From positions 38,874,001-38,938,000 of the forward strand of contig CM060734.1 in the NCBI GenBank assembly GCA_030704615.1: DNA of 64,000 nt, read 5' to 3'. This stretch comes from Takakia lepidozioides. Taxonomy: Eukaryota; Plantae; Bryophyta. The notes beneath the pieces were generated by a model. The model was not told the origin of the DNA. It saw nothing but the letters and a program-made list of their open reading frames with translations, and made no database searches. A program made the translations under genes and the position numbers. Of this stretch, positions 2,856 through 30,287 are shown in pieces (position 1 is the first letter of the stretch; the number at the start of each line of letters is the position of its first letter).

Positions 2856-3990
2856 CTAACTCATTAATACTATTGAGCCTCCTCCCAAACGGCTCGCAGT
2901 CAAGGCATGTGTCCGAAGACGCCTCCGGTTACCACAGCCACTTGCAACGGTCTCCACTCCAGAGGACACAGAGATACTTTCAGGAAGGTGAAACCGGCTG
3001 ACATTGTCATCTGAAATATTACTGCCAACTCTACTTGATGCCCTTGAAGCCTCCTGGCACGCTCGCCATTTTTCCCAATCACGCAGCTCTTGTTCCTCTT
3101 TTAGAATTCGTTCCTTGAATGTAACTGGGGACAAGCGATGGAAATGACAAATGTTAGGCCCAAAGTAGAAGTTTTGCATATGGATATGTTGAGGTAAGAG
3201 TGCAAATGCAGCTGCAAAAGAATTGGAAAATCAAATTATGAACAAACAAGAAAAGAGTGGGATCCACGTGTCTACCAAGGTAATCAGGTTCCTTTTGTTG
3301 TGGGATCCAAATACGAGGATCAAGATATCTTCCATACCAGGCCCAGCAGGCATGGTCTCGACCAATAGGCTTATGAGAACACTTTGACCGGTTCTCGCTA
3401 ATGTAATCAACGATTGTTGAAGCTCCAGCCATCTCCGATATATATGGCCACACTGCTTTTGTCATATCATCCCGGTCATGCAATCCATTTGGTGAAGGCT
3501 TGAATGAGAAAGGGAAGAATCCAGTATTTTGTGGGTTTCGCACGCCTTTTGATGGCTCATCATCTACAAGAAGTATTTGCCCTTGCGTAGCAAACGGTCT
3601 ACCAGGGTATCTGACAATAACACTTCGAATATCCTTCACGAGATATTTCATCCCGGGCCTGATATAACCGGTGGTATCCTTACAATCCTCAGCAGACCAT
3701 ATGAAGCAAAACTTCTTCGCTATTCTTCGTGGGGACGAAGCTCTCCAACATCCTACAAAGAACACCTCTATCAGCACATGACCAAATGGCCACGTGAAAA
3801 TGCTTCAATGCAAGGTCCAGAAACTCCAAGACTCCAGGCCGAGGCACCACAAACGGTCTGTCAGGAACTTGAAGTGTCACATTCCTGAAACGAAATTTCT
3901 CCTTAAACAGTTCACCGCCGGTTGGGGGTGGCCGGTAGCAGAGGAGTCCGTTGACACTCAAAATTAACAACATCCGTTTTCTCTTCCCCG
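2856..3990 (-). pseudogene. FCP1/NIF-like HAD phosphatase domain, copy 3 (catalytic Asp absent), plus a probable last exon
   Basis: LLILSVNGLLC...VPRPGVLEFLDLALKHFHVAIWSC / FCFIWSAEDC...YLVKDI...ILLVDDEPSKGVRNP. Frameshift near 3730. Confidence 0.8.
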
Positions 3991-5616
3991 CTGTTGCATG
4001 TAAAGGATGAGAGACAAAGTTATCCTGAGCAGGTTAATCACACACTAACATTAGTGTTTCTGCCATGAAAAATACCCACGACCCAGAATGATTGAGTGTA
4101 TGGAAGATTAACATGATTGTGCAGAAAATGGCAAAATACTGCACAATGTTGTGGGCTTGGAATGTTTCAAGAAGAGGGTGAATATTGCTAAGAAGAGGAA
4201 CGTCGACTGTCAAGTGGAGGTTCAGGAAAGTACCTTGTACGGAAAGAAATTGATGAAGGTATCGTGCTGCATCCCTGCCTGTTGAGAAAAGATGAAGTTA
4301 ATTAGTGCATAACCAAATGAATAGAAAAAATAATAAAATTTTGAGAAATGATATCGAATAATACCGATGTCGCCTTATTGGAAAGTCTCGATGGCGGGCT
4401 TGGCATCCCAATGGACGTGTTTTGACGAGACCCCGATATGTCCGAGGTATGCATTTTCTTCCTCGAGTCTGCTTTGTCTCTGACGAAGGACTTCTCTCCA
4501 GTGGAACCGATTTGTAGAAGAGATGGAAATGGTTTGGGGCCCTATTCCGCTTCGTCGGTGCAGAACATTGCGCCAACACTGCAGGGTCGGGAAGCCCAGA
4601 AGTTGCAATTGAAGTTTCGTCTTTATCCTCGTCGAAAGGGTTTCGGAGAAGGGGAACGGAATGGAAATTGTCCCTTGAGCACTCCACATCCTGAATGGAA
4701 TTCACACGTAACAAAGGGATTACCTCGGAACAGATTTCCAATGAAGACGTCGTTTGACAGGAAGGTCACAATCCGCAAATTTTCTGGCCTGGAGTAAAAC
4801 AAGAACATCAGACCCAGTACTAAGGAAAACAAAAGGACGAGTTAGAATTCAGATATAAGTAATTTTACCTGACTCCTTCTGATATGGGCTGTCCAACCTT
4901 CATGCTTGGGAGAGAATGATGGAAGAGAGATAACATTGTGCTGCGGAGCCGCAGCCGCAGCCGCGTCCTCAACGGATGACATTCTCGAGGTAGATTTCAC
5001 ACCATTGACACTTAACACGGAGGGTGAGGATTGTAGAGTGAGGTCCACGAAATCCCCTGCACATTTGTCAAGTTGGCTTCCATCTTCGACATTCAATCCT
5101 AAACAATCCTGCAACAGAACATCATTTTCAGGAATGGACTGAATCGTGCAATTGAAGGGAAGCCAAGTGCCTGGATGATGCTTCACCGTCGATGACAGGA
5201 TTCTCAACAGTAGTGTGAATGTTGTCCCTCTGTAGACGAATTTCTGATATGGAGGATTCCAATGGAGGTCCCGACAAGAAGTTGGCATCAGCAGCATCGC
5301 CATGAACATGTAGAAACGAACTTACAAGGTCAATGTACAGACAAGGAATAACCTCCACTGCACAGTGGAGGTTGTCGGATTTGAAAAAAACCCCGAGACG
5401 AGTTTCGGAGAAGGCCTGTATTTCAGAGGATCGAGATGGTATGGGGTGGAGAAACGCATGAATCAGACCAGGAAATAGCAAACAATTCCATGTCAATTCA
5501 AATTGAAAAGGAAATCACAGCACACAACAGTTTTTCTAGAAAAACAATACAACCTATAAAAAAAAACCAATCAAAAATAAACATTGAATCACAGACGTGG
5601 TTGATCAATAAAATCT

Positions 5617-6347
5617 TTATTTTGAAGCATCATATCGGAGATTCCCGTAATTAGAATCATCAACATAATCCAGGAGAGGCTTAAACTTGGGATCGGTGGA
5701 AACATTCTGACAAGGCTTAAGTCTTATCCTCTTTTCCCTGAGATAACTGGAAACGGTGTGAGATTTCTTCATTTCAAGCAAATATTCTGAAGAACCTTCT
5801 GGAGATAGCAAGAGACCGTCTCAACGGATTCAAACGATTTTAGAATCAGGCAGGATTCAAGCGGGTTCAACACACACTTAATAGCTGAATCGTCAATAAG
5901 TAGAGTGTTACTCAGGTTGTACTGACCACCAAATCTTTGCCAGACCGTCATCAATGGCTTCAAGAACAGACTCGGCGGGTCGTATCCTAATATAAATTGA
6001 GGGTGGACAGAAGTAGGACATAAGATACAATCTTCCTTAGACATAACGAATGTCGGCTGAGGAAGACCCCGAAGCATAAAGTCCAGGATAGGCTGCAAGT
6101 TCTTGTACATCATGCAGCTCCATATACCTAGATGGAAATGTTTGTTCAACTATGTCCACATCTCACGATATTTTTCCCGCCTATAGACAAGTCGAAATCC
6201 AACAAGAGCTGGTATCATGTAGTCTGTCTCGGACATTCGGGGGACACTGTAGCTCTTCTGGTGCTTCAAGACTTTGCACAAAACTCCATTCAGGTCAAAA
6301 ATTATCAAGCGCAATCCTTTTGCAACTGGAGAAACTGGTGCTGCAAT
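5617..6347 (-). pseudogene. FCP1/NIF-like HAD phosphatase domain, copy 2
   Basis: LIIFDLNGVL...LVYRR...HFHLGIWSCMM...FLKPLMTVW...YNLSNTLLIDDSAIKCVLNP. In-frame TAG at 6150 and a later frameshift. Confidence 0.85.
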
Positions 6348-6519
6348 CTGTGAGAAATTCATACATCCACTCAGGTGGTAATCAAGATAAACCAAGGACA
6401 GGATTGACATTGGGAGCAACGTCCACTGGATAGTCGAGGTTCATGAAAATCTAGAGCAGCTATCTACGTTTCAAATTGTTCCAATGAAGCGTTAGGAAAT
6501 TTTTGTTTTCTAAGATAAA

Positions 6520-7263
6520 CCTGCCACTGCAAATCTCATAGCAAGAGACATTTGACCTTTGGGTCATTATACGGTGGACATCCTATGGGTTTTTCCACGT
6601 TGAATATATCAGCGTCTTTTCCGGATAACCGCAACTCTTCCAGGTGCGGTTTGAGTTCATCAAGAAGAAACATGTCCTTGTATGGGTCGACGAGCGTTTT
6701 ATATTTTGGAAGGAAGATACCGAACGACTTTGGGTTCAAGTACTACTTATACATATTTTCTACAGTGTCGATAAGAAATGTGTTTGATTTGTACGCTACA
6801 GGGTCGTCTACAGTGAAAAGGTCGTAGAGACGTTTAAGATATATTGGCGCTTTCGGATATTTGGGCCATTCGGCACTGAACGTCTGTCTATGCTTCACGT
6901 AGTTCTCATTGTTGAATTCCCTGACCTTGTAAAACCTTCTTCCAAACAAAACCAGCCCTATATCCAGGACATTTTCTAACGGTCCAGTGTTCCAAAAGTA
7001 GACCTCAATATGCTTAAGGACCCATTTCAGGAAGTCGTCCCACCATTTCGGACTGCAAGCTTGAATTTTCCAGCGCACACACAAGGATGGGTTGCGGGAG
7101 GGGATCTCGGGCCATCTCGGATGTAAACCTCACCAAGGTAACCGATGTCAAGAACCAGGACGTAGTATCCTGGTCGAGATCCTTTCGGTCCCTCAGAGAG
7201 GCGATACCAATCCTGTGGGTTCACAGATTTGTGATAGTCGATTGGAGGGTGAATCATATCATC
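6520..7263 (-). pseudogene. FCP1/NIF-like HAD phosphatase domain, copy 1 (highly divergent)
   Basis: YVLVLDIGYLG...DFLKWVLKHIEVYFWN...YLKRLYDLF...SNTFLIDT...LNPKSFGIF...FLLDELKPHLEEL. One frameshift and one in-frame stop. Confidence 0.6.
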
Positions 7264-7366
7264 CTGTGGAATAACAGAACAATTTATTTATTTTGAAAAC
7301 TAGAAGAAGGACAAAGAAGAACATAGCTAAGATGGTTATGAGGTGTATACCCGTTTCGAGGAGGGG

Positions 7367-8369
7367 TGTCGCGCGGCTTTTACTCACACATCCCTTCGCT
7401 ATCCGAGGTGGGAACTCCAAGATAGAAGAGTTGGAAATCTCTAAGCACTCAGCCCGCTCAGAACAATCAGTCATGACCTACAGCTAGTGTATCATGGGGG
7501 TGTTTCCTATTTGTACTCCTTCCCGCATTCATGTTAGCGAGTTACCTTACTATCTGCAATTAAGTATCAGTTTGCTTCAGAAATCTATCAAGTTCCATCC
7601 ATTCATTCCACAGCTTCACTCAGGTCTCTCGACACAGTGTGAGTATGAAGTATGTATCAGATTAATATCTATCAAGTATCAGGCTGAAGCCATGGTGTCT
7701 CTATTCTGTTCTACATTACAACTCTACTTCTTGCATTCAGCAAGTATCAATAGATCGTTCTCCTCCTACTCCGTACTCTCCCTCTTTCTGCTCAGAGATG
7801 CGCTCTCCGCTTCATTTCCAAGTAGTCCTCTCCCCCCCCCCCCGAAGTCCTTCTAGAAGTCATCCCCCAGAAGTCCTCGTTCTTGACTTTTTCCCCCTAC
7901 AAGCTGTTCTAACCGCTTTCCTAACTAACCGTCATCCCTGTATTACACGTTCCTTTTGCAAATGTCGTTCATTCACAGTCGTTCCCTGCCATTGATAACT
8001 GTTCCCCAGCTGTGCGAAGCTGTGACTAGCTGTGTAAGGCTGTGGCGGACTGTGACTGGCTGTGTCGGGCTGTGTAGGGCTATGCGAAGTTGTGGCGGCT
8101 ATGTCGAGCTGTGACGGGCTATGTCGGGCTGTGATTGGCTGTGACGACGGTGTCGGCTATGATTGGCTGTGGCGGCTGTGTCAGTTGTGTCGGACTGTGA
8201 CGGGCTGTGACGGACTGTGTTGGCTGTGACGGGCTGTGTAAACCCCCCCCCCCTCCCTAAAGTGCGCTGCTGTCACCCCTAAGGCTCCTGTTGGTCTCAG
8301 TCTGTGCAAAAATTAAGGGTACCCCACAGATCCCGTAAAAGTGTCTAAGTCCCAAGCAGCCTTCTAACA
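7367..8369 (-). repeat. 3' LTR (1003 bp)
   Basis: Direct repeat of 19798-20763. About 23 substitutions by manual count, plus indels in the GCTGTG repeat tract and C runs. Adjacent to the PPT. Confidence 0.96.
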
Positions 8370-8373
8370 TTTA

Positions 8374-8387
8374 CCCCTCCCCCTCTC
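8374..8387 (-). other. Polypurine tract
   Basis: GAGAGGGGGAGGGG on the minus strand, 4 nt before the 3' LTR. Confidence 0.9.
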
Positions 8388-8408
8388 AAAAAGTGGTGTC
8401 CTCACGGT

Positions 8409-11400
8409 TTACTGTTTGGGATTAGCAAACCTTTGTGAGCGAGCACCCTTCTGACGTTGAGAGTCTCGTGAAGGACTCTGTGTGCAAGCCCGAGGTCTGT
8501 CACTAGTTGACGGAGATGATTGAACACTACCTAGATATGTCAGGCCCTCTGGAGGCTGATATCGAGGTAATCTTTCAAGCATAGGAGACCCCCGTCGCTT
8601 CTTCTCTGCCATCTGAATTGCATAGTCCTCTGCCATGTCAAAAGAGTCCGCTGAAGAAACAGTTGTATCAGAATCCTCATCGCCTCTCAGGTGTTTTAAT
8701 GGCCGAACTTTTTGTGGAATCCTCTGGGGCATACAATGTTGTCACACCATGTCTGGAAGTTTAAACTGCAAAACTTGCTGTAAACGCTGAATGGCGAAAT
8801 TGGTGAAGACCCTGAGCTCCTTGTCTGTCTAGGTGAGTGGGATACCAATGACTTGTGAATTGTGCAAGTATTTCCATGCCTCATGTCCCTTAAAGAAAAT
8901 ATCGTCAGGGCCGAATTTCTGTGTTGACAAATTGTTCCAGGGCGCATGAAACCATGAACGAATCTGAGAATCCTTTTTCATCATAACTTTTGCCTCATAT
9001 AGGTACATATGAGGTGGCACTGAAGGTAAGACCCAATGATCCCCACTGGAATAACTCAGAAAGCGCGATTGCATCTTCTGCTGCTCAATGTGATAACGTG
9101 CCAGAAAACAAGCAGCGTAGTATAACCCGCAGCCCATTACAATACTTGCTACCTCCTTGGTCTTGGTATAAATGAATCCATGTACAACTTGGAAGGCAAT
9201 TAATTCCTTCAACATGGTACTTGTCTCATGCCAGTACTGCGCAAAGTGATGATCCTCAATTGGTCGATTGTTCGGAAGAACTTTAGTCATAGTTGTCACT
9301 GGCAGCCAAATGCGCATGATTTGATAGTAATGTGCCAACGACTGCGGAGGACTAAATTTCTTCCAAGCCAAATCCAACACAATGGGAATTTGGTTGAAGG
9401 GCATAATCATAGCCCGACTGTACTCCCGTGCAGCAGGAGTTTTAGGTGGGTTAAAAGCAGCGTTCCCCCATACCTCAGGCTGTGGTGACTGTGGTGTGGT
9501 TGTAGTAACAACAGGGTCAGCTACTGGCACAATGACTTGTTGTGGTGTTGGTGGCACTAGCTCTTGTACCATTGGCATCTCCTGCACCCCCTGCGAAGAA
9601 GACTGAAAAGCCAAAGTTCTGGCTTGTAAATAAGAAGCCATCAGTTGCTCCTCAGGTACAAAGACTCTCTTGTCAATATTTGATGTCAGGTCCTCTACCT
9701 GAGTCTGCAGGCCGTCTACATCCTCTTGTAGCTCCGCTGTCCTACTATAGACATTGTCTATAGTATTTGTGGCAATGTTCTGTACTTGCAGTCTGAGCTC
9801 ATTCATCTCGCTTTGGGTGAGCTTTCGTGGTGCTTTGCCCTCCACCGGTCCTTGTGCTAACCAGACCTACATAAGGTGGTTATCCACCAAGTTGCTTGTG
9901 GCACCCCTGAGAGTCTGCTCCTCTGTGAGCCTGTACACATCTATCTGCTGCTGTAAAGCCTCCATGCGCTTCGCATGAGGTTCAACCAAATTCGCATATG
10001 CAGCAGCCAGATTATTGGCTTCCTTCCAAGCCTTGTTAGCCACAGAGAGTTCATTTCTATTGGACATGAGCGTTTGTTGCAATTCCAGGATGTACCTCTC
10101 TTGGTCAGCTTCAACCTGTCTGTATTGCTTGAAGGTATTCTCATTGCGACAGATTGTATTCTTCATATCGACAATGAGTTTCGTTTGCTCGACATTGTCT
10201 GCCTCTGCCTTCGTACATCTTTCCGCTTGACTGTTAACTTCTAATGTAGTGTGCTCAAGCGTAGTTGTGTGTGTAGCACATTGTATGGCCATCCTGTCAT
10301 GCACTGTCTGCAACTCCATATGTAGTGCATTCACTTCTTGCAACTTGCTTTCATGCTTCACCTGCATTTGGTATAGCTGTTGCTTATGTGCTTCGTGCAA
10401 CTGGTCTTGCGCGAGGCCTGCCTCAATCAATTGTTCCTTGGCCAATTGCAAAGCAGCTTTTGTACTCTCTAAGTCTTGCTGTATCTTGAGAGTGATCTCC
10501 TCATCGACCTTGTTTGCACACTCAGTGGCAAGTCAAGCCTCAAACTCCTTCCTGAGTTCCTCTCTCAAAGCTGCCAATTGGGTAGTTGGAACATGGGATT
10601 TGACATAAGTGCCCAACAAATTAAGTGTCCTGCTTATGGAACTCATAAGCATGGCCTGTTGAGGGTCATCATGGTGAGCTTGCTGCTGTTCTCCCTGATC
10701 CTCAACAGTGTGATGCCTCACGAACCATTCAGGCCATTGCCCCACCAGATTTTCTTCCTGAACCACTTCATCCGTCACAGGTGTTGCAGTGTCTTGACAT
10801 TCTACCTGTGGTACCTCCATCACAGGTGTGTGTATTATATGCATAGCAGGGTTTCCCCTGGACAACCGCTGCACCTCTGCAATCATTGTTTCCCTGACCA
10901 AACCAGAATTTTCATAGAGAAGGTCCCCCTTCTCAATTTCTGCCACCACCTGTTCTGTAGTGGGGATATCTAACCCTTCTTTCTCCAAATCAATTATTTG
11001 TGGTGGAACTGCATGGACAACTTGTGGTAACTTTGTGACAAGCTGATCATCTGGCTGTAATGGCTGTGATACTGAAGTAACTTCCTCTTCCCTCTCTGAA
11101 GACCCTGCTTCCAATAATAGCAGCTCTCTGTGCTGCTGAGAGCTTGGGAAACATTATCATGCGGTTTCCGTGAAGCCAGTGGATCCGCCACTACAGTCTT
11201 TCCCCGCCTATGTCTCTTAGACTGGGGTTGCCCTGCCAGTCCACCCTCACTGTGTGAAGAGCCTTGCTCTTCCATTGCAGTGGTTTCGGTCTCAAACACT
11301 CTCATCTCCTTTCTTTCCCGAGCATCAAGTATGCAAGAATCAAGAATTATTTGCGCAATGATTGGGCCAGACACTATGATAGGAGACTTTGCGGCAGTGC

Positions 11401-11950
11401 CCTGTAATCTTTTCATCTCCTCTACCAGTGCGTTGTACATTATGTCCGCCCATGCTACCTCTTCTCTTCTCAGGGCTTTGAGTATTTCCTCTGTGAAGGA
11501 TCTGCTCAAATACTATTGGTTCTGTTTCATGGCAAACAGAACGTTCAATACCTGGCCTACCTCCCTTAGCCCTGGGTACACGGCCTTGGTACAAGCATAA
11601 CCCTGAGTTTTAAAGAAATTCCCTTCTTGGAATAAGTCCCCTATTTGCAGTCTTGCCCTGTGCTCCTCCACATGCACCTGACCTGATGGCAATTCAAACA
11701 ATTGTTGTAGGTATAGGGGAGTAATTTCTAATTCAACTCCCTTCACCGTTGTTGCTCCTGTCCTAGGCTCAAAGTTCTGCAAGAATTGTAACATGTACTG
11801 CCTATGGTGCAATGTCCAATCTTTGCTTTGCAATCCTTCTAATCGCAGCTCCTTCAGTAACTGTACCGCCTGTGGAGGAGCAATCGTTTGTTTCTGCAGG
11901 ATTGTGGTGCTCTTCACCCTGATTTCTTCCATTCCTCTCACTCTCTTCAT
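8409..11950 (-). pseudogene. Large extra ORF downstream of integrase (~1180 codons): plant-transposon/Athila-type N-terminal domain, coiled coil, unknown C-terminal domain
   Basis: ORF pieces 11513-11950, 10994-11509, 10533-11114, 9867-10451, 8829-9845 and 8409-8732 join by read-through of TAG/TGA codons and two frameshifts. QFLQNF...TVKGVELEITPLYLQQLFELP and VAWADIM resemble Transposase_32-type Athila ORFs. Q/E/L-rich heptad middle. Confidence 0.7.
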
Positions 11951-12655
11951 TCTAGACCCACAGAAAGGTTTTGGCTGTAACAATTGAAGAAATGCCTGCA
12001 GGGCACAAAGCATAAACGTATGGTTGCCACAAAATGCTATGGGTAATTTCTTGTAAGCCTGCGGGGCTTGCAAGCATCGATCAAGAGAAAAGATACTCTC
12101 TGTTTTTCTATCCCCGTGCCACTGCGTAAATAGTATAGCGAGCGTATAGTCTGTTAGTTCCTCCATAGCTTCAAAGCTATAGCATTGATGGTCTGTCCCG
12201 TCGTGACGCCCGTTACTTGGAACGACGCCGACTTTTGCGCTTAAAATTCCTCCATTTTCTTGATTCTGCTTCTGGCTTTTGATTGGCTGTAACTGATGTG
12301 ACTGGATTTTAGATTTCATTTCCTTCCATGGATTTTCCACTCTGGACTGTCCACTAGGATAGCACATGTGACATGGATTTCGCTTTTCGGTACTTTTTAA
12401 GGGTTCTGTTACCATTTCCCCGTATGCATTAATGGCCCCATAATAAGTTAATGTGCCGGGTAGGTATTTTGACGGCCAATTTTGTCTTTTTCCTTGATGA
12501 CAGTCGCCCTTGCAATCCATGTCCGGCTGTGTGTCTCGCCCTGGCGTCCACGTGTCCATTTCTATACGTGCCTTTGTCCACTTTTCCGCTGGCCACTCTC
12601 CGGATGTTAACCCACGTCCACCTGTCACTGATCCAATGGATTATGTAACCCTAGT

Positions 12656-13053
12656 AGGCTGTGTTGTGCTGTGACAGGCTGTGTCATACTGTGGTACTCT
12701 GTGATAGGCTGTGTGGCATTGTGGTAAGCTGTGATAGGCTGTGACACGCTGTGATGGGCTGTGATAGGCTGTGTCACGTTGTGATGGGCTGTGATAGGCT
12801 GTATCATGCCGTGATGGGCTGTGATAGGCTGTGTTGCGCCGTGCTGGGCTGTGATAGGTTGTGTCGCGCCGTGCTGGGCTGTGATATGTTGTGTCGCGCC
12901 ATGCTGGGCTGTGATAGGCTGTGTCGCGCCATGCGCGTGCTGGGCTGTGACATGCTGTGTCGCGCCGTGCTGGGCTGTGATAGGCTGTGTTGCGTCGTGC
13001 TGGGCTGTGATACGCTGTGTCGCGCCGTGCTGGGTTGTGATAGGCTATGTCAC
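12656..13053. repeat. Tandem array of ~13 x 30-bp units built from 10-bp GGCTGTG subunits
   Basis: Unit GTGCTGGGCTGTGATAGGCTGTGTCGCGCC, repeated between the integrase and the extra ORF. Confidence 0.92.
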
Positions 13054-13179
13054 GCATATACTGCCCGCCCTGGTCATATACGCTCGGCCTAGCGACAAGT
13101 GCTCCATACTCTGTTGGTATCACTGGCGCAGCCCGTGACTGCTTTTGCGTTTCAACATGCAAATCATGCTACAATGGTT

Positions 13180-16100: not shown

Positions 16101-17074
16101 GGTTTCCTCTTCAATTGGTGTTGCTGACACTACACCACAGCAGATACCTCTTAAACAACTTAGGCCTTCCAGCCGCATCTTGCAACCTGCTCCCACTCTG
16201 GGTGTGCAGCGAACAGGGTAGCTTCCTGCTCCTCATCCAGTCCTCCTTTCCAGTCATACTCTCTGACCCCTCGAGGTCTTCTCGTAGCAGGTAATCTACT
16301 AGATTTCTTTGTGGTAATTTGTATCTCGTGCATCCCATTATGCACGGTTAGTAACTGAGAATTCCAGTCATGGAATACCCTGGCCTGTTTCAGCCACGGA
16401 CGTCCCAATAATAAGGAGTAAGCCTCCATGACTTCATCCATCTTCAACACAGTTACTGTGATCATAAAGATCATCTTCTGTATCTGTATCTTAACTCCTC
16501 TTATCAATCCCAATGGCTGTACACTTCTTTGATCTGCCATTGTTACTGTAAATGGGGCTGGTTTCATGTTACTTAGACCAAGCTTCTTCCTTAATTGGTC
16601 TGTCATGATATTTACTCCAGAGCCTCCATCTATCAGTACATCAGTTAGTTTTGTGCTTCCAATTCTCAATTGGATTACTGGCATAGAATCATCAAAGTCC
16701 ATGACTGTTTCTCGCCCTTCCGGCTTCACATTATAACTGGTCACCTTGCTGTTCAGGTCTGTGTTTCCTGTCTCCTGGGCAATTCGATTGATTGCTTGAT
16801 ACAGCCTGTGTCTACAATAAGGTGCCACAGCCAATAGCTGTCCAATGGTAATCTCTGCTTTGGTCTGGCATATTACTTCAGCCAAAGTCCCTTCATTACT
16901 TTGCATGTCTGCAACTTCTTTCTTCCTTTCATCCTCACTCACTTCTTCTTCTCCATCAGAATCAGAGGAATCTGCCATAGGAATATCAGTACTCTTCTGC
17001 ATTTCCCTTATGGTATCTGCCACTTCCTTGTGCAGTTCCTTCTCATCTCTCCAAGCCTCATCATCTTCAGGCAT
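13180..17074 (-). pseudogene. pol: pol: aspartic protease, reverse transcriptase, RNase H, integrase (frameshifts and stops)
   Basis: PR VLIDGGSGVN. RT DGFSGYNQ, MPFGLCNAPATFQ, FLDD. RH CDASGEALGAVL, NYSTTEREALA. INT HH-CC zinc finger and DQGSHF...GQAE core, with a degenerate W-x-PY tail and no chromodomain. Confidence 0.95.
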
Positions 17075-18821
17075 ATCACTGCCATTTCATTATCATCATC
17101 TTCCTCAACTACTGGAGGTATTAGTTTGGCTTTGCTTCTTGTTACTATCATTGTACTTACTTCTGGTACAACACATGGCCTAACCATGTGAGCTGCCACC
17201 ACTGGGCCCTCATTCACAGGAGCTCTCATCTCATTTTGGTGTCTAATCCAGAATGAACAGGCTGCCTTGCGATGTCCTGGCTGATTACAATAGTAACACA
17301 GTTCTTCACCATTGGGTCCTCGCCCTTGGTCTGCTCTTGGATTATTTCTGTAATCCTGATTCCCTGGCTGGTAATTCCCCCTTGGATTACCCTGATAGTT
17401 GCCTCTGGAATTTCCTTGGTAATTCCCTCTTGAATTACCTCTCCCTTCCATGCCATTGTTATAACCACCAGGCCTACCATAGTGGTCCTGATCACTGTTT
17501 CTTCTTGGCTGGGGTTGCACTTGATGCACCCTTACTTGCCTAGGTTCTCTTGCAGCTGTCCTTCTGTTGTAGTAACAATTCTCAGTAGAATGGTTATCCA
17601 TTTTACAGATAGTACAGTGTTTCTCCTTCATGTGGCATTCAGTGGTGGTATGGCCTTCATTCTGGCACTTTGCACACCAAACACCCTTCCTCCAATGTGT
17701 TGCAGCCTCTGTGGCATACTTCTTCAAGATTTCTTCTAATCTTTTCTCATAGTTATCCCTCTTCAACTTCTCCTTTCTCTTACTCTTCTTTTTAGTTCTT
17801 GCTCTTCTTCTTCATCTGACTCATCCTCAGAGTCCTCATCATCCCTTTTCTCTCCTGAGCATTCCCAATTGCTCAATTCTGTTTGCAGTTTCAAATGCCT
17901 CCTCCACTGTATTATGGGGTAACATATCCACTTTCTTCTGCAACTCTGGTCTTAGTCCACTCACAAACCAAGTCTTCTGTAAACCTGGTGCTGGTACAGC
18001 AGCCAGCTTTTTCATCATCAATTCCATCTTTTCCATATACTCCTCAACAGTTTCATGCTTCTTTTGCTTTAACTGTTGTAAACTTCCATACACTTCATCC
18101 TCAGTTTTACTTGTCCTGAACCTATTTCGGAATGTTGTATTCAAGCCATTCCAGGTTAGGAAATGATTATCAGGGAATCTTGCATACCATTCACTTGCTT
18201 TCTTGATAAGTGAACAAGGAAACAATCTCATCTTGGCATCATCGCCATTCTCATTGTTCACTATACACATGTGCTCAAATTGGCTAATGTGTACATCGGG
18301 ATCCCCTTTTCCTGAATATATTGGAAAAGGTGGTTTTGCCCGTGTTGGTTGTAACGCCATCTGTGGCCCTACCTTCTGCCCACTGACAGGTGCTGGCACC
18401 CTTGCTGGTGCTGGTCCTTGAGGACCTGTTGTAGTTGTGGTGGATCTTCCACCAAGTGGTGGCCCCTGAGCACTCCTTGCTACTGGCCCCACGATATTCA
18501 CAGTATTCCAAGCTCCAGTTGCACTACTTCCCACACTCCCTGTCCCCCCAGAGCCAGATCCAGGCAGCCCGCCTGATCCCCCTGAGCCGACACCTTCGTT
18601 GGCGTGTGATCCAAGTGCTCCACTTGATCCAGGTCCAACGGGTTGGGATGTCCTGGTTGTAGTCTCAACCTCAGCTGTTGGTCTACTTCTTCATACTCTT
18701 CCTCTTCCAATTTCTTCTCTCTATTTTCATCCTCCAAGTTCTGCCTTTGGGTTTCTTCTTCACTCATGTAACTCAACTGCAATGGTGTTGGAGAGTCTGA
18801 ACTCTCCGTTGGCTCTGCCAC
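17008..18821 (-). pseudogene. gag: gag (retrotransposon capsid plus three CCHC zinc knuckles), frameshifted
   Basis: FPIYSGKGDPDVHISQF...LFPCSLIKKASEWY...LKQKKHETVEEY capsid motifs. Knuckles CAKCQNEGHTTTEC, CTICKMDNHSTENC and CYYCNQPGHRKAAC. Confidence 0.9.
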
Positions 18822-19777
18822 ATCCTCTCCTCCTTCTTCACCTTCCGCTTCAGAAACTGGAGTTCCTGCTTTTGGTGTTCCATGCCAACTCTTATCAAAG
18901 ATTTATGTCAAATCTTTTATCCAGGGATGTACCTCAGATCTTTCACCTCGTGATTGATCTTCTTCCCGTACCAATTCCCTTAATCTTTCTTGCAAAGAAA
19001 AAAAGGAGTGGCATCCAACTCTAGTTCTTCCGGTATGGGTGATGTATTCTCTGATCTTAATGGTGTGAGAGGTCCAGATGATTCCCTATGTCTATTCCTC
19101 TCTCCCAAAGATATGGATAATTAGCTTTCAGATAGCTTTATCTTTTTGCTGAATATCTCTGGCGTCTAGCTTCTCTTTCATCACTCATGTCCCATGTCTT
19201 TCATTTCTTTTAATGTGGCAATAACCAAAACTCTCTTCTGTAATATCTCTCGTATATGCCTGGGTTTCTTTCAAGCTTCAATGCACCCTTGGCTATACTA
19301 GAAGTCTCCGTTACCATATAACCATATGGCAAACAAGTCTGGAAAGTTGTTCTTGGTGTGAGTTTGATCCACAAAATATCCTTTGGAATCCAATTCTTTA
19401 CCAGTACAAGCTCTTCATGCATATGAGTATAAACATTCACCTTTCTTTCCTCCTAGCCTTCAAACTCTACTCGCTTAATGGATAGCAATGCTATCACCTA
19501 AACCAGTGTTGGTAACCAACGTGCTCTTCCTCTACAGGCCACCTGATAAATCTTTATCACTCCTTTCTCCAGACCCCACTCAGGGTCAGCATCATGCACT
19601 CTCTTAAGAATGTTTTCTTTACAACCGTCTGGCAATTCCAAGAACCTCTGAAAGAATCGTTTGGACAATCTTTCCTTCTGAGTTTCACAGGGAATTTGAT
19701 TCACATCAAATTCTTTAATTCTCCATCCACCATGATCCCACCAGATGCCTGTCACATCTCGTTGTTCATGACCCAGT

Positions 19778-19795
19778 TCCCCAGTATGGTCGCCA
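19778..19795 (-). other. Primer-binding site, probably tRNA-Arg type
   Basis: TGGCGACCATACTGGGGA on the minus strand, 2 nt after the 5' LTR. Resembles the complement of plant tRNA-Arg 3' ends (TGGCGAC...TGGGGA). Confidence 0.8.
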
Positions 19796-19797
19796 AA

Positions 19798-20763
19798 TGT
19801 CGCGCGGCTTTTACTCACCCATCCCTTCGCTATCCGAGGTGGGAACTCCAAGATAGAAGAGTTGGAAATCTCTAAGCACTCAGCCCGCTCAGAACAATCA
19901 GTCGTGACCTACAGCTAGTGTATCATGGGGGTGTTTCCTATTTGTACTCCTTCTCGCATTCATGTTAGCGAGTTACCTTACTATCTGCAATTAAGTATCA
20001 GTTTGCTTCAGAAATCTATCAAGTTCCATCCATTCATTCCACAGCTTCACTCAGGTCTCTCGACACAGTGTGAGTATGAAGTATGTATCAGATTAATATC
20101 TATCAAGTATCAGGCTGAAGCCATGGTGTCTCTATTCTGTTCTACATTACAACTCTACTTCTTGCATTCAGCAAGTATCAACATATCGTTCTCCTCCTAC
20201 TCCGTGCTCTCCCTCTTTCTGCTCAGAGATGCGCTCTCCGCTTCATTTCCAAGTAGTCCTCTCCCCCCCCCCCGAAGTCCTTCCAGAAGTCATCCCCCAG
20301 AAGTCCCCGTTCTTGACTTTTTCCCCCTACAAGCTGTTCTAACCGCTTTCCTAACTAACCGTCATCCCTGTAGTACACGTTCCTTTTGCAGATGTTGTTC
20401 CCTCACAGTCGTTCCCTGCCATTGATAACTGTTCCCCAGCTGTGTGAAGCTGTGACTGGCTGTGTAAGGCTGTGGCGGACTGTGACTGGCTGTGTCAGGC
20501 TGTGTAGGGCTATGCGAAGTTGTGGCGGCTGTGTCGAGCTGTGACGGGCTGTGTCGGGCTGTGATTGGCTGTGATGACGGTGTCGGCTATGATTGGCTGT
20601 GGCGGCTGTGTCTGGCTGTGTCGGACTGTGACGGACTGTGTAACCCCCCCCTAAAGTGCGCTGCTGTCACCCCTAAGGCTCCTGTTGGTCTCAGTCTGTG
20701 CAAAAATTAAGGGCACCCCACAGATCCCGTAAAAGTATCTAAGTCCCAAGCAGCCTTCTAACA
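19798..20763 (-). repeat. 5' LTR (966 bp)
   Basis: TGTCGCGCGG...CCTTCTAACA on +. Near-identical to 7367-8369 and adjacent to the PBS. Confidence 0.96.
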
Positions 20764-20998
20764 AGGGGTTCCGAATTTGCTGCTGTTGCTGCTCGCTCTC
20801 TTTTCCTTCGCGGTGAGCAACGACCATCTGCGGCGCATCTCCTCCATCTCGCAACGTCAACTGGGCAGTGGAGGTTGTTTGTTTGGCCGGATCAGTTGGG
20901 CTGGCCTTTATTGTTAAGTCCACCTGCCTCCTCACTGTTTGAGTCGCGATGGATTCTGTTCGGGTTTGTGTGATTTCCTCCAATTTCCGTTCATGGAT
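20764..20998 (-). pseudogene. Exon interrupted by the LTR retrotransposon (continues at 7361-7351)
   Basis: Acceptor ATATAG|ATC at 20999/20998. The frame IHERKLEEITQ...QQIRNP continues through the empty site as SSKR to donor CGG|GTATAC at 7351/7350. Confidence 0.6.
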
Positions 20999-21177
20999 CT
21001 ATATGAGTTTTCGTAACCGTCAGTCACATGTAATGTTGAAGAAGGTGGGAAATATCAAGATACAGATTAGATATTGGCAAAAACACAACCAGAACACAAC
21101 CAGATGCAATACACACAATTTGTTACATTTATAATGCTTAAAGACACCATAAATCTCAGGTGTCATTCGTTACCTAC

Positions 21178-24100
21178 ATCCAAATTGACATGCTGGGAGA
21201 CACTTTGAGAGCAAGTTGGGCTCTGAGTTCGGCCTCTGCCTCCGCTGTTTTTTCTTGGAGACGAGCTTTTAGTCCTGGCTCTGTCACCACTGTCCATTTT
21301 TGCAGGGGACGAGCTCTTAGTCCTCCATCTGTGTCCGCTGTCTTTTGTGGGACACGGGCTCTTTGTCCTTGCTCTCTCTACCCTCTCTTTGGCGGGAGAC
21401 GGGGACATTGGCGCCGGCTCGTCCCCTTCTACAGGTTTGAACCAGTCGTTTGCACTCCCAATAAAATTGCCGTGCACCTCGATTGAGCTCGCCTCCGCAC
21501 CCCTTGATGGTGAAGCAGGATTACTCTTAGTTCTCTCGCTTGAACTCGACGAATCCCCATCCAGAATCACGACATTGTGGACCGCAACGTCTTGGGTGAT
21601 GTTCTCAATACCATCCTGTGACTGAGTTCTGAAGTCATGTATTACATCTAGGTGTCCAGCCTCCCAACGGTTGGCATTGTCACCATCGTGGCCCTCGTTG
21701 TCCCCGTTACCATCGATGCCCTCGTCCTCCTCTCCGTGTTTGGAATGTCCGCCTCCTTCTTCCAAGTCTTCATCTTCCTCCTCCTCATCCTCATCATCGT
21801 CTCCGCCGTCAACCTCTTCAGCAACATTGTCATTCTCAATTTGAAGCTTCTTAAAATCCGCTTCAACTTTTCCTTTGCAAATTTTTTTTTTGGTTGAGTG
21901 GTTGATGTCAAGCACTCAAATGTTTCTTGCCTGCAAATAAACCCAGTCAGTAAAACAGAGGACGTGTTCGATCAAAAATGTAAAATTTGTATTTAAAATG
22001 CAAAAAGGTTTTACACTTACATGAAGGGCGTACGTCAACATCACGCCTCCGAAGATGTTGACAGCGGACATCCCATCTCGACAAAACAGGGAGGCCAAAT
22101 AGTCGTATGTGTCAGCTCGTAGCTCATGATTATATGTCCTGCACTCTTCTTCAAAAGCTGATGGCTTCTCAGAGGGCCCTTCTAGAATCGGCTGTATTGG
22201 CTCGATTAACAGTATGGTGGAGATGTGCTCGTCCGGATTCTGCATCTCCTCAGGTGTCGCTGGAAAAACATAGTCCAGGCACAGTACAGTCCGAGAGAAA
22301 GTCTTTGTGCTGTTTTTGTAAATATTTTCATACTCTCCCGGAACATAAAATCCCTGACGGACAAGATACGATGTTCTTCCGGGACCATTTTGGATGTAGG
22401 AGATCAGATTGGCCGAGGACGGTTGCGTCGAGAAGGAAACAAAAACACTCATGTTCATTTTCTGAGCCACAAAGGCCTCTAGTATGTTCACATAATCCTT
22501 GGACTCAAATACGATAGAGTCGTCTTTAGAAACTGTATTGACGAACACCATCGCTATGTTGTCAAACCGTTTCTTCGGTGTGAGTCGCAGACGAGACTTG
22601 GCATCGGCGAATTTTGTTTCTCCACCCATGATAGCGTAATGAGTCTAGAAACTCGCTGAAATAATCGCCATGTCATCCTCTCTATTCTCATAAGCTTTCT
22701 TGATGGAGGAGACGTACTTAACAAAAGCGGTCGTGAGTGGTTTTGTCTCCATGTTCATCTTGATCTTGCTTTGGATGTAATCCGTCCCCAGTTTGTCTTT
22801 AAATGTTGAGAACTCTGCCTTATTGAAGTGGTACTTTTTCTTCACTTCACGCCACTCGTCCCTAGTGTACGGTTCCGTGTACTGTTTGCTCCTCCGAGGC
22901 CACCCCAACATTTCCATCACATCGTCGACAATAAACCGGCGCATTTTCATGTCGTCTATGTACTTGTTCATGCCTTGAATTGATTTGTCTTGACCTTTGT
23001 AATCTCGAATGGTCAATTTCAGGTCCAGGATTTTCTGCGCAACTTTTATCAGCTGCCATCTATTCAACCCTTGCAGCTTTGCGATAGCAGATTTCGTGAG
23101 CTGTTGCTGTTCACCCTTGTACTGTATCCCAAGCGGGTCGAGTAGCTTTCCCTGCTCACAGTTTTTGAAAATATCTTCCCAGATCTTCCAAACGTCGTCG
23201 TCGCAAAGTACCAGGACCATTGCCTCCTTAATGCTACCCATTTCAAGTATCAAATGACAGGCAAACATGAACTCCTGCATATTCATTCAGGGATAAATTA
23301 GTTGTCACTCCGACAACAGAAGTATTCTTTAGCATAAAATGAATGTGAATAGTAGATTTTGATTCCATAAATGCATACCTTCCATTGTTTCGTCTCGGAC
23401 TTGGTGGTGTGATCGTTGTATTTTCTTGGCTTCCCCCTCAGGTTGAATAACATTCGCACATGCGCAACTTTCTCCGGCATTGTTGTATCAAACTTTTGCG
23501 CCTTATTGGGATCGTTGAGGAGCTTTGACAACTTCAGGAACCTTTGTTCATCGGCAGACCATACAATCTTTGCAGACCACTCCCGGTAGTACTCCTTCAG
23601 TTCGTTGTCGGCAATATCCTCGAGAAGTTCCTGCTACAATTAATGTAAAATGGGTGAGAAAGTTGAAAGTGTGGGGATATATCCAATTTTGTAGTTCAAC
23701 ACCAACCTCCACTGCCCAGTGGAGGTTCGTTAAAAGAGAGGTCTGGGAGGAAATTAAAGTCCATTACCTTTGTTGCCACGATGGTGTATTATCCACCAAT
23801 TACGAAGAACCTTGATACGTCCATCTCCTTCCATTGCTTCGGTCGCGATGAAACAATCTTCTCTGGATTGGAAGGGTTGATTGGCGCAAGATACACCGGA
23901 TGTTTCGAGTCCAACAAATGAAGTTGGAAGAGTCACGCTTTCACTTCGTCCTTATGCTTGATATTTAACGGCCAGTAAACCATGCTCCTTGGAGCTAATT
24001 CCATCATGGAAACCTTCACAAGGAAGGTACTCTCGAATCCGAATGGAAATACATCATTGTATTCCTTCGTGAGCCTCTCCTCCATCTTCTCGCATTTTTC

Positions 24101-24626
24101 CTTGTCAAAAATCTCCCCAGCTTTAGGTCTCTTGTTATCTGACATCAATGCTGGATCCTGATCCTCCTTCTGTTTCTTCTTTCCTACGGAAGTCCCGGCC
24201 TCATTGCCATCATTGTCGGCTGTCGACGACTTGCGTTTTCCCTTCTTTGGCTTTGATGCTTCTTGTAGTGCTCGCTTCTTGCGAATGTCGTTCCCCATTG
24301 CGTGCCAGAAAAATACTCCAAGCCCTCGACAAACCTACGTCTGTAAATACTGAGCCCTCGTCTGGAAATCTAAAGCCCAGTTCAACGCATTCATTCATCA
24401 ACGACTTGTTCAGACGACCCACCTCCACTTTGAAACCAAACGTCCTGGGGGTTCTCGCATCCTCATGCAGGAACAAAACCAACATCGGGTTTTCCTCTTC
24501 AGATTCAAGCTCTATATCGAGAGCTTCTATGTATTTTAAGTCTGTTATTACTCCAAGACTTCTGTAATGAAAAGACAATTTGTGATCAGGAGGTGTACCG
24601 ACAAGCACGATGCCCCAATCTGTCAC
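21178..24626 (-). pseudogene. Spliced ParB/Srx-like + degenerate beta-class N4C/N6A DNA-methyltransferase-like + acidic/SP-repeat protein
   Basis: Phase-0 GT-AG introns at 23631-23767, 23275-23378 and 21931-22020 join the ORFs. ParB-like motifs ELAPRSMVY(W/R)PLNIKHKDEVK and FFVIGG(*/Q)(Y/H)TIVATK. MTase motif X/I-like YDYLASLFCRDGMSAVNIFGG...ALHARNI(*/R)VLDI. Stops at 23933, 23789, 22645 and 21916. Confidence 0.62.
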
Positions 24627-25067
24627 CTCTGGATTAAGCTAAAAAATAGCGGTATGCTCAGTTTTGAAATGTGAGGACTTCCGGCATACGAATGCGCCAC
24701 AAATATCTGCAATCAATCCCTGGACGCAATCTGGTGGTGTAGGATGTCTTCTGTTACAACCAAACACAAATTCATTAGATAATCAAATAACCTGATCTCT
24801 CTTATTAGCATCCATTATTCCAGAAATGAGAACCTCCACTGGACAGTGGAGGTTCGTATGTACAAAACTTTCTACATGAAATGGGAAATCCTCTATATTT
24901 TACAAATGTTGAAGAAAAAACCTTTAATGAAAATGCAGGAGCCATTGAGTACATCATCCTGAAACAGGACTAATCTACAATAGAAATCTTCAAACCTAAT
25001 TCGTCCAAAATATACTAAGGAACTTCTCGCACTATATTCAGACGATTCTAGATTATATACCCAAGAA

Positions 25068-25700
25068 CTACAGAATGCTCCTTCTTATCTCTCTGAGTGT
25101 ATCAGACGAATAGTCTGGAGGGGTATATTTTGGGGATCCGGTGATACTATCAGGAGACGGAGGGGAGTATCCTGGAGATCCGGAGATGTCCAGTAGTTCC
25201 AGGACTCCCCCGCTCGTTTCAGTGTCTAGGAAGAAGTTTGGAGGATAATATCCCTCAGATCCTGATGTGGATTCAGGAGATGCTGGATATCCAAAAACGG
25301 TCACTCGTATCGCCGCCAATGTGTCTGGGGAATAGTCTGAAGGGGTGTATGTCGGATAATCTTGGGAGTAGGCAGGAGATCCGTTGATATCATTGTTTAC
25401 ATGAACGCTTTCTCTTATTTCCGCCAGGGTATCCTTACAGATGACTTCAGGTATATTGTTCGGAGATTCGAATGCGTTCCACGGGGATTCTACAGTCACA
25501 TTTTCGTCATTGACAGACACTTTGTTCGGCTCGGTAGACCCCCAACTGGATTTTTCATCTGGTTCCGAAACACCATGTTTTTTATCTGGACGGTCCGCTT
25601 CCATCACGTCTACCGAACACCGTCTCTTGCTCCAATTTAATCTAGTTGTCTTGTACTCATCGTCTGACACCGGTTCCCCACCCTCGTTCCTCTTTTTCAT
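25068..25700 (-). CDS. Hypothetical 210-aa protein with Y-S/T-P heptad-like motifs
   Basis: Uninterrupted ATG-initiated ORF containing GSPAYSQDYPTYTPSDYSPDT, GSPGYSPPSPDS and GSPKYTPPDYSSDT. Confidence 0.5.
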   Translation of the reverse strand: MKKRNEGGEPVSDDEYKTTRLNWSKRRCSVDVMEADRPDKKHGVSEPDEKSSWGSTEPNKVSVNDENVTVESPWNAFESPNNIPEVICKDTLAEIRESVHVNNDINGSPAYSQDYPTYTPSDYSPDTLAAIRVTVFGYPASPESTSGSEGYYPPNFFLDTETSGGVLELLDISGSPGYSPPSPDSITGSPKYTPPDYSSDTLREIRRSIL

Positions 25701-26659
25701 TCTGACATAAAAACTAATCAGAGTGTGTAACTGGCTGACCCAAAGAAATATCGAACTTCCACTAGGTAGTGGAGGTTCCCAATTATCGTATCCCAGTCTC
25801 GTTGGAAAGTATGTGTCACACTTACAATGTTACACATATGATTCCATCACTCGTTCCCACATCGTCTCAAGCTAATTTCAATTTTCCCGTAATTATCCGA
25901 TTTCGTCCTTACTTTAAAAAAATGCCTTTCAGCTTCTGCATACAGAATTCACGCAAACCTCCACTGGGCAGTGGAGGTTCCAGTTTCTAGTTGCTCATGT
26001 GCATGACATGGGTCTATGAATACTCTACTCTGGCCTGCACGAAGCCTACTGTTAGCATATGTCTACTGTAGAATACAAGTAGACTAGGCTATCATGGTTT
26101 TTTAGAATTGCCGAATTCGACATAATTGGATAAGAAATAAAAATTTCCATTCAGAATCGAATTTGAATGGGAAGAAATGCATCAACTAACGCTGGATTTG
26201 GGGATCAAGAAAACGGTTGAGAAATAAACATCCGGACATTTCCGAAACCATTGTCCTCAATAAACCACCACAATGAACAAAACAAGCAATACAGCCAGCA
26301 CGGTAATCTCCCGCCACCCTAAACCATTACCCTAATCGACCAGAACAAGCACACACAAACCCAATTGCACACAAAACCACCACACAAAACCACCCTACAA
26401 ACCATCAGTGAATTGAAAAACAACAGTGAAGCAATGACGCAGGAATGCACTGAAGCACAAAATGGAGCAGGAGTGAAATGAATAGCACTGAAGACAGTGC
26501 AGTGCAGCAGAGAATGAAGCAGGATCCAAACGAATTGAATCTTGAATAGGCCACATGAATCGAGAGCGGGCCAACACAAAACTGAGAACAGGCCAACACA
26601 TGAATTCAGAACAGGCCAACACAAAACATGAAACAGACGACGAAAAGAGGGAGTTTTTA

Positions 26660-28591: not shown

Positions 28592-30287
28592 TTCATATTA
28601 TGACAAAATTGTCTGAAAGGTGCCAAATCTGTCAACCTGTCATGTGAAAGTCATTTTTCCAAAGTTGTCTGTCACAGTGAAAGTAAAAAAAAAAAAAATT
28701 AACCTGTCACAAAAAAGGTAGGGCTACCTGTCAAAAAACAACACAGCCTGGGACCCACATGAGAGAAACAGCAGGATCGAGCGAAACTAAAGAAAACAAC
28801 TAACTTACTGAAATCGACTGAAACTCGTCGTTTCTCTAAACAGCAGCACTAATCCCACCCGGCCCATACCCGCATCCATCTTATAAACGCCGATAAGTTA
28901 AGCCGAAATGAAGGCGAAATGCTACAGGAGGCTGGGAAGGAACATAGGGGACGAAAGCACACGTCACTACCTCACACTGAGCTACCCAAAATTGGGCGAG
29001 AGACACAAGCAGCGGGAGAAATCAAAGGGGAGGAAAGGATTTTGGTCTAGAAGTCATTTCTAGCAGCTTATAGGGGAGAGGGCAAAGTTGTGTATAATTG
29101 TGGTAGAAGAGTCAAACGTACCTTTGAGGTATCGAAGAGAGGAAAAGGGAAAAAACATCCATATAGAAAGAGAGCAAGGTAATAATGCCTATTCTTTTGG
29201 ACCTGTCTGATGTAACCCCTCCTGAAGTGGGTTGTGGGGTTCTTACCCACTGGGTGTGAATTCAACTGGATATACCAGAACTGTCTTGCACTGGTAATGA
29301 CAATTCATTAACAGGGATGATGTAATGGTAATATTGGTATTGTACCAGGAAGAAATATGGTCGAGGATGCCCACCCTTGTGACCAGTTTGTTGATTTCTG
29401 CTTTTTTGGATTCCCATAATGTGTTATTTCTGAATAGAGTGGGATCAATTGACTGTGCAGAACATCCATGTGCTAGAGAAGGGGGCGATGTCTCTGGTTG
29501 GACATCTTGGTGCTTTCAAATATGCATGAGTTTGTGAAGAACAGCCGCCTGAAGCAATTTGCTTTAAGGGTAATCTAGTTTCCCTTATGCATACATATGT
29601 AGTGCTTGAGTGCTAGGTTTAGGAGGTTAGATTTGACTTTTGGTGATTTGTTATTGTGATTCAATTCTTTACAGGAGACGCCATGCCACTGGGCTTGCTG
29701 TGGATGTTATAAAAGGCTAGGGGATGTATCTATCCTTTTTGTTGGGTGCAGATCCATCCACTAGATTTCAAGCTCGGGAGCATCAAGGAGCGTCAACAGA
29801 TGGTCGGTTGGAGAATCTGGAAGTAACCAGGGGGGAGTATGTGGCAAGGCCTGGTGGATGGGGATCGTTGGGACATTTCCAGTATGACCCTCCTTTACTA
29901 GGTGCAAGGTGTCTCCTTAGTTATCATTCTTGAGCCACCTGTTGCATATTTGAAGGAAGAGAGTTCTTATATATTGCTGTGACACAGATCGTCTATACGT
30001 TCTGTAACTTTTTGTCAGTGCAATGTGAACACAGCTATTAGAAGTGGTAGTCCATGCCTAAACATATGGTGATGTTATGACAGCTGCTGACCGAGTTGAT
30101 ATATTTGTCTGATTCGGAACACAAGCCTCAAATTCGCAGCTGATACCCATGATATGGAAAGGTTGCCCAACCCAAAAACCTATGTTGCAAGGAGGCTGTC
30201 CTCATGAAGAATCATGTTTTGAAGTATTTTTTGCTACTCCATAAGTTCTGTGGGTCTGATTCTGACAAGAGTTTTCGGTATTGCAGG

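Follow-up and report, generated by a model that had tools for sequence, protein, structure and literature searches.

In a 64,000-nucleotide stretch of the Takakia lepidozioides genome (GenBank assembly GCA_030704615.1, contig CM060734.1, forward-strand positions 38,874,001 to 38,938,000; hereafter the window, to which all coordinates refer), we analyzed a minus-strand locus whose non-coding gaps hold nine copies of one 24-bp palindrome. Our main new result is the way in which the half-sites of this palindrome vary: what is conserved is base identity at eight half-site positions, not pairing between the arms. The array is real, non-random, and so far unexplained. The locus that carries it is a recently inactivated, light pseudogene, split by the later insertion of a Ty3/gypsy long terminal repeat (LTR) retrotransposon, and it combines lineage-specific sequence without detectable relatives with what appear to be three diverged, UBLCP1-like units of the NIF/FCP1 type of HAD phosphatase (units A, B, and C). 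We propose, with a probability of roughly 0.4 and on the strength of sequence patterns, that the locus was once a lineage-specific unit and that the array of dyad sites in its gaps served a dimeric, sequence-specific factor that regulated or marked it. An initial annotation of this DNA had instead taken the interval for the cargo of a large DNA transposon, with a ParB-like protein that recognizes the palindromes of its own element.

RESULTS AND DISCUSSION

A palindrome array with conserved half-sites

The palindrome AACCTCCACTGNNCAGTGGAGGTT was matched eight times in the window at ≤3 mismatches, against 0.00 matches expected, with starts at 4199, 5350, 6418, 20853, 23704, 24831, 25754, and 25956, and a ninth, weaker copy starts at 2516. 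The palindromes of the initial annotation are real and confined to the interval, and its count of eight was one short. All nine copies lie within 2516-25979, with none in the retrotransposon and none in the other ~38 kb of the window. Listed from 5' to 3' along the minus strand of the locus, they are the following.

25956-25979 (copy 9): perfect arms around a GG core; located 5' of the Y[ST]P-rich open reading frame (ORF)
25754-25777 (copy 8): a single position without pairing; its end is 53 nt upstream of the ATG at 25700
24831-24854 (copy 7): perfect arms, the dyad extending to GAAC...GTTC; in the gap between the Y[ST]P-rich ORF and the next coding pieces
23704-23727 (copy 6): perfect arms; within the inferred intron at 23634-23767
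20853-20876 (copy 5): no pairing at arm positions 4 and 7; shares with the retrotransposon the gap that separates the large exon from NIF-like unit A
6418-6441 (copy 4): no pairing at positions 4, 7, and 11; in the gap that separates unit A from unit B, upstream of an ATG by 55 nt
5350-5373 (copy 3): perfect arms; precedes the ATG at 5309 by 40 nt
4199-4222 (copy 2): positions 4, 7, and 11 unpaired; upstream of NIF-like unit C
2516-2539 (weak copy): one mismatch to the 16-position degenerate motif, four unpaired positions; at the 3' edge of the interval

Every copy sits in a non-coding gap, outside the main reading frames, and one of these gaps is an inferred in-frame GT-AG intron. Each gap holds a single palindrome, apart from the two copies 5' of the first ORF, and three copies precede an ATG by 40-55 nt. 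Without the LTR element, successive copies are spaced by 1683, 1151, 1068, ~1030, 2851, 1127, 923, and 202 bp. The sequence that they share is limited to 24-26 bp, as their flanks cannot be aligned with one another and show no target-site duplication; on these grounds an origin of the palindromes as introners or MITEs (miniature transposable elements with inverted repeats) was rejected. No other internal DNA repeat or duplication and no terminal inverted repeat was found in the interval, nor were other short hairpins found in its gaps.

Written as a degenerate motif, AACNTCNACT-N4-AGTNGANGTT, the palindrome is matched exactly by eight copies and with one mismatch by the ninth, and the window contains no further match at ≤2 mismatches (0.02 expected). 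Across the 18 half-sites, positions 1, 2, 3, 5, 8, 9, and 10 are identical in all 18 and position 6 is identical in 17, and positions 4, 7, and 11 account for 15 of the 16 substitutions. A rough estimate puts the probability of such clustering under uniform decay at ~7e-6, corrected for the choice of 3 positions out of 11. Between one and four arm positions are unpaired in five of the nine copies, and the sole change that keeps a pair is found at position 11 of the copy at 25754. The perfect copies fold as 10-bp stems (z about -4). Because base identity is kept at eight positions per half-site and the substitutions are non-compensatory, the pattern suggests that the palindrome is a constrained site for a symmetric dimeric binder rather than a hairpin.

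The locus is a lightly decayed, gene-like coding relic

Taking out the LTR element restores a continuous interval of ~10.3 kb, from ~2500 to 25980. The LTRs of this element (7367-8369 and 19798-20763) are direct repeats of ~1 kb with TG...CA ends that differ at 24 of ~960 aligned bases and also by indels; the insertion is flanked by AGGGG, duplicated from its 5-bp target, at 7362-7366 and 20764-20768, and gag, aspartic protease, reverse transcriptase, RNase H, and integrase are encoded on the minus strand of its interior (Pfam). The two TG...CA LTRs, the 5-bp duplication, and the gag-PR-RT-RH-INT order together assign the insertion to Ty3/gypsy. Arrays of a 10-nt GCTGTG-type unit occur in both of its LTRs (8029-8239 and 20449-20641), and a 30-nt-period array of the GCTGTG-type unit lies inside the element between integrase and LTR (12655-13055). 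The coding features of the interval, all on the minus strand and again listed from 5' to 3', are given below together with the insertion.

25068-25700, minus strand: Y[ST]P-rich ORF, intact, 210 codons, with three DTLxxIR repeats; no family match
23768-24638, minus strand: orphan coding pieces with one frameshift and three in-frame stops, ending in the so-called ParB-like string (~23770-23803)
23634-23767, minus strand: inferred intron of 134 nt, phase-0 GT-AG (AAAG/GTAATG ... TTGTAG/CAG), joined in frame by reading
23379-23633, minus strand: orphan piece resembling an exon, with the second inferred intron next to it
23275-23378, minus strand: second inferred intron, 104 nt, phase 0, by reading; no palindrome
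21166-23274, minus strand: large exon in a single frame with 2 in-frame stops, comprising pieces of 213 aa and 242 aa (the latter the 'methyltransferase-like' one) and a tail that is acidic and rich in Ser/Arg; no relatives detected
7367-20763, minus strand: Ty3/gypsy LTR retrotransposon (direct repeats, target duplication, Pfam domains), a later insertion separate from the cassette
6536-7257, minus strand: NIF-like unit A, motifs VLVLDIGYL, VYFWNTG, and FLIDTV; one frameshift and one in-frame stop; no Pfam match
5617-6362, minus strand: NIF-like unit B, motifs IIFDLNGVL, GIWSCM, and LLIDDS; one in-frame stop and one frameshift; Pfam NIF (E = 1.1e-3), UBLCP1 (E = 0.09)
4298-5309, minus strand: orphan unit of broken ORF pieces; no family match
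2856-4033, minus strand: NIF-like unit C, motifs LILSVNGLL, AIWSCA, and LLVDDE; one frameshift and a C-terminal extension; Pfam NIF (E = 4.5e-4 and 0.064)

In the minus-strand frame at 23286-21166, 2 of 707 codons are stops, whereas the remaining two frames contain 33 and 46, and it is because of this scarcity of stops that we regard the locus as having been coding until recently. Decay amounts overall to ~8 in-frame stops and at least five frameshifts across ~3,000 codons, and the stop count gives an estimate of the order of 2% neutral decay. The observed/expected CpG ratio of the cassette (2400-7366 and 20770-26000) is 0.73-0.82. Because this matches the host genes of the window (0.72-0.82) and exceeds the adjoining retroelement-rich DNA, with 0.38 in the retrotransposon (7367-20764) and 0.35 in the flank that holds a long interspersed nuclear element (LINE) and a PPR relic (26000-34000), the history of the interval is gene-like and unlike that of a long-silenced transposon.

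Read from the sequence, the piece that ends in YTIVATK runs into GTAATG, and 134 nt on, TTGTAG is followed by CAG GAA, with which the frame resumes in phase 0. The gaps around the copies at 20853, 6418, and 4199 likewise permit phase-0 in-frame GT-AG joins, and such joins easily arise by chance. An ATG and a stop of its own are present in each NIF-like unit, and the units are compact and share one orientation, with gaps of ~180-500 bp; the locus may have been a single long gene with multiple exons or else a series of short genes closely packed in the same orientation. The tail of the large exon (21166-21400, minus strand) is of low complexity, with a long acidic stretch followed by three Ser/Arg-rich repeats of the R(T/W)KSSSP type. 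These results bear out the minus-strand coding sequence, the LTR insertion, and the YSP-motif ORF of the initial annotation, the last of which is the intact ORF at 25068-25700. Its account of spliced ORFs holds for two phase-0 GT-AG introns, which fit by reading, whereas the other breaks are stops and frameshifts; because these are plain in-frame stops or one-base shifts, we attribute the many frame breaks to decay and not to splicing.

Three diverged NIF-like units

NIF (PF03031) was the sole Pfam family found for the units, with 20.4, 19.1, and 13.4 bits for pieces of units C and B, against a gathering score of 21.8. UBLCP1 (3shq) was the top PDB match for unit B (E = 0.09) and also the sole PDB match (E = 0.17) for a three-sequence profile built from the second halves of the units. 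Units B and C are weakly similar to each other, and unit A is linked to them by motifs and a weak alignment only. The likeness to the NIF/FCP1/SCP/UBLCP1 family of HAD phosphatases lies in the order of the IWS/T and (L/V)DD motifs, whereas the units differ from that family in their sub-threshold scores, in the loss of DxDxT, and in being broken by stops and frameshifts. The counterparts of DxDxT read LDIGYL in unit A, FDLNGV in unit B, and LSVNGL in unit C, so that the second Asp is missing in all three and the first Asp in unit C. Because this motif is degenerate, the units are predicted to be inactive or decayed, that is, either pseudo-phosphatases or decayed copies.

We accept the three NIF-like units as likely. 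Of the three NIF/HAD domains initially annotated, B and C have sub-threshold Pfam NIF matches, while A is recognized from its motifs and a weak alignment. A connection with the C-terminal domain of RNA polymerase II finds no support, as the NIF-like units are without the second Asp of DxDxT and the Y[ST]P-rich ORF contains no heptad array.

Orphan coding pieces and searches for relatives

In the protein searches, exons and pieces were queried one by one, each up to its stops. The so-called ParB string reads VIGG-stop-YTIVA, the Q and H of the motif in the initial annotation having been supplied by its reader, and it has Thr in place of arginine. Pfam, NCBIfam, and PHROGs returned no ParB match for 23936-24334, 23792-23932, 23699-23788, or 23301-23633, which is a weak test because two stops cut the candidate core into pieces of 55, 47, and 30 aa, and phmmer found no ParB match in the PDB for 23936-24334, the sole piece searched there. 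For the 242-aa piece (21919-22644), no methyltransferase match was obtained in Pfam, NCBIfam, or the PDB, by tblastn against phages, or in a word-indexed search; by reading, it contains no PP[YFW] motif, and NIFGGVM alone loosely recalls FxGxG. Its sole phmmer match among 1.84 billion representatives, a LapA/Calx-beta repeat adhesin, was rejected as compositional. Word-indexed homology searches, limited to proteins 0.55-1.75 times the query length, found no relatives of the 242-aa piece, the 213-aa piece, or NIF-like unit C, and NCBIfam and PHROGs scans of the pieces gave noise only. Single-sequence AlphaFold models of the 242-aa and 213-aa pieces of the large exon were uninformative (pLDDT 35.7 and 39.7). 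Until an intact relative comes to light, we advise against using the labels ParB and methyltransferase.

The exact palindrome had no match in IMG/VR, JGI metagenomes, or GTDB genomes. The degenerate motif was recovered only as isolated single sites, without clusters (13 loci in IMG/VR and at least 120 in metagenomes), and we took these sites for chance occurrences. Protein-guided locus scans of IMG/VR viral contigs yielded nothing, and a search of the literature for the half-site turned up only primers and tRNA-related strings. No further copies of the coding pieces occur elsewhere in the 64-kb window. Family scans of the window detected no transposase, as had been noted at the outset, and no recombinase, with transposon proteins present only in the gypsy element and in a LINE remnant.

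What the array may have been for

Under the reading that we favor, the motif would be a candidate binding site for a symmetric dimeric sequence-specific factor, most likely acting on DNA, and the array would serve to mark this one locus, or to regulate it jointly, by controlling transcription or chromatin. The general idea in the initial annotation of a locus with its own recognition sites is compatible with the substitution pattern and with the non-coding placement of the dyad sites. Several points nevertheless weigh against a dimer-binding array. The position-specific pattern is based on 16 substitutions and is drawn from a single locus, and the copies are non-independent if they arose by copying one another. 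The palindrome is also able to fold as RNA or as cruciform DNA. Family scans recognized no DNA-binding domain, including helix-turn-helix (HTH), in any piece, and since the locus is a pseudogene, any function is past. A more specific proposal, made by analogy, is that the locus is the dead copy of an undescribed plant selfish element or of a lineage-specific regulatory module, whose own orphan protein would bind the gap dyad sites as a dimer; self-addressed targeting would then have been coupled to pseudo-phosphatase NIF domains, in a VANC/VANDAL- or ParB/parS-like logic assembled from unrelated parts. We consider this version unlikely, if worth stating.

Among the alternatives, an element acting at the level of RNA deserves about as much credence as that specific proposal, which is to say little. 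Intronic hairpins, self-complementary copies that pair across exons and thereby direct splicing, the choice of exons, or the making of circular RNA, or marks for 3'-end processing would fit the copy found inside an in-frame GT-AG intron, the phase-0 joins that can be drawn across the gaps of three further copies (20853, 6418, and 4199), and the 10-bp stems formed by perfect copies. Conservation, however, tracks base identity and not pairing: unpaired arm positions occur in 5/9 copies with one compensatory change only, the first ORF has two copies upstream of it, chance readily yields in-frame GT-AG joins, and no Rfam family was matched. That the array is the product of a tiny selfish palindromic insertion, spreading locally and without function, we hold to be very improbable. 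Such spread would account for copies that share only 24-26 bp, but its neutral decay is disfavored because the substitutions concentrate on 3 of 11 positions; moreover, there is no target duplication, the palindrome is absent from the retroelements and from the other ~38 kb of the window, and none of the copies falls within the reading frames.

The remaining explanations appear to us no more probable. In the first of these, which is the one initially put forward, the interval is cargo of a large DNA transposon, and a ParB-like CTPase clamp loads at the palindromes and brings methyltransferase-like and FCP1-like domains to them for anti-silencing or self-recognition. The dyad sites are indeed confined to the locus and kept as sequence, NIF-like units are present, and the string FLVKV...LAP...VIGG-stop-YTIVATK, joined across the intron to ELLEDI, loosely recalls by eye the core of ParB/Srx. 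Set against this are the stop codon within that motif, the Thr where ParB has arginine, and the failure of every piece to match ParB in Pfam, NCBIfam, or PHROGs, and of the one piece searched there to match it in the PDB; the 242-aa piece has neither a DPPY-type motif nor a methyltransferase match, and no relatives bar the spurious adhesin. The transposon itself fares no better, as no terminal inverted repeats, termini, transposase, or second copy were found within the window and the CpG content is gene-like. It is just as improbable that the palindromes are sites of recombination, whether recombinase sites of the hix/gix or dif type or the abutted ends of short mobile units, in an interval that would be a cassette array. 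The dyad of 10-4-10 (or 11-2-11) with a variable centre has the right form, and one site lies between successive units at spacings of 202-2851 bp without the LTR element, but the window holds no recombinase or transposase, target-site duplications are lacking, and one site falls within an apparent intron of a continuous gene; we know of no site-specific recombination cassette array in land-plant nuclei. Marginally less probable still is the relic of an integrated large DNA virus or virus-like element, in which unidirectional short genes shared a palindromic promoter or terminator. Compact units in the same orientation with gaps of ~180-500 bp, mostly orphan coding sequence, and undepleted CpG, as for a recent arrival, would suit such a relic. 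It would have to be reconciled with GT-AG introns, with the lack of hallmark genes, and with the lack of protein or motif relatives in IMG/VR, and the giant-virus relics described from mosses and lycophytes have other genes, with palindromes unmentioned (PMC4083422).

Setting of the locus in the window

The window is land-plant nuclear DNA, in which a CCCH zinc-finger ORF, an Lhcb6/CP24 exon, the exons of a flavin adenine dinucleotide (FAD)-dependent oxidoreductase, and a PLS-type PPR relic are found. An Rfam scan of the window found no RNA family at threshold. The features outside the locus are as follows.

57159-57719, plus strand: Lhcb6/CP24 exon (E = 7e-105 against the pea CP24 chain), an ordinary host gene
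49980-51158, plus strand: exons of a FAD-dependent oxidoreductase (DAO), an ordinary host gene
43837-45723, plus strand: intronless ORF of 628 codons, an AtC3H23-type tandem CCCH zinc finger, in a GC-rich block (0.52-0.55); no record matched the exact protein as read from two start codons
30266-31300, plus strand: coding relic of a PLS-class PPR protein with a frame change, probably a pseudogene
26720-27770, plus strand: LINE-type reverse-transcriptase tail (Pfam zf-RVT, E = 4.6e-9), which adjoins the cassette and bounds it on the 5' side
26552-26636 and 26368-26394: short tandem repeats (22-23-nt unit, 3.3 copies, and 13-nt unit, 2.1 copies) between the last palindrome and the LINE remnant

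Comparison with known systems and conclusions

Several known systems resemble the locus in part. Bacterial ParB-parS likewise places palindromic sites close to a gene cluster, which is a resemblance only: parS is 16 bp long, whereas the motif here is 24 bp, in a eukaryotic setting with introns, with no ParB/Srx domain or HTH detected and the arginine of the CTP motif absent. The 3'-end signals that follow the 'hairpin rule' of Mimivirus are also palindromes between compact genes; those of Mimivirus vary between genes and work by pairing, whereas here one sequence recurs and its pairing is unconserved. The crossover sites of serine recombinases, hix and gix, have dyad arms around a short variable centre in a 12-2-12 arrangement, whereas the present locus is eukaryotic, has no recombinase gene, and holds one of its sites in an intron. 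Closest in logic are the VANDAL (Mutator-like) transposons of Arabidopsis, whose VANC motifs occupy introns and the non-coding DNA of intergenic and terminal regions, are rare elsewhere, and are bound by a protein that the element encodes (PMC5735166). In both cases a short motif is enriched in the non-coding parts of one element or locus. VANC motifs are 9 bp long, non-palindromic, and arranged in dense tandem repeats of one orientation (PMC5735166), whereas here single 24-bp dyad sites occur one per gap, ~1 kb apart, and general scans, made with no dedicated VANC profile, turned up no VANA, VANB, or VANC homologue, transposase, terminal repeats, or evidence of mobility.

The copy described here is itself broken, and its present value lies in a defined motif, AACNTCNACT-N4-AGTNGANGTT, and in orphan coding pieces, both of which can serve as search queries. 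Locus-specific protein-binding motif arrays in non-coding DNA let some plant transposons escape silencing, and VANDAL alone among them is well worked out. If our proposal of a dimer-bound dyad array is true, this locus would provide a second, unrelated example with a long dyad site, which would amount to a new sequence-specific DNA-binding system and offer a handle on element self-recognition in plants.

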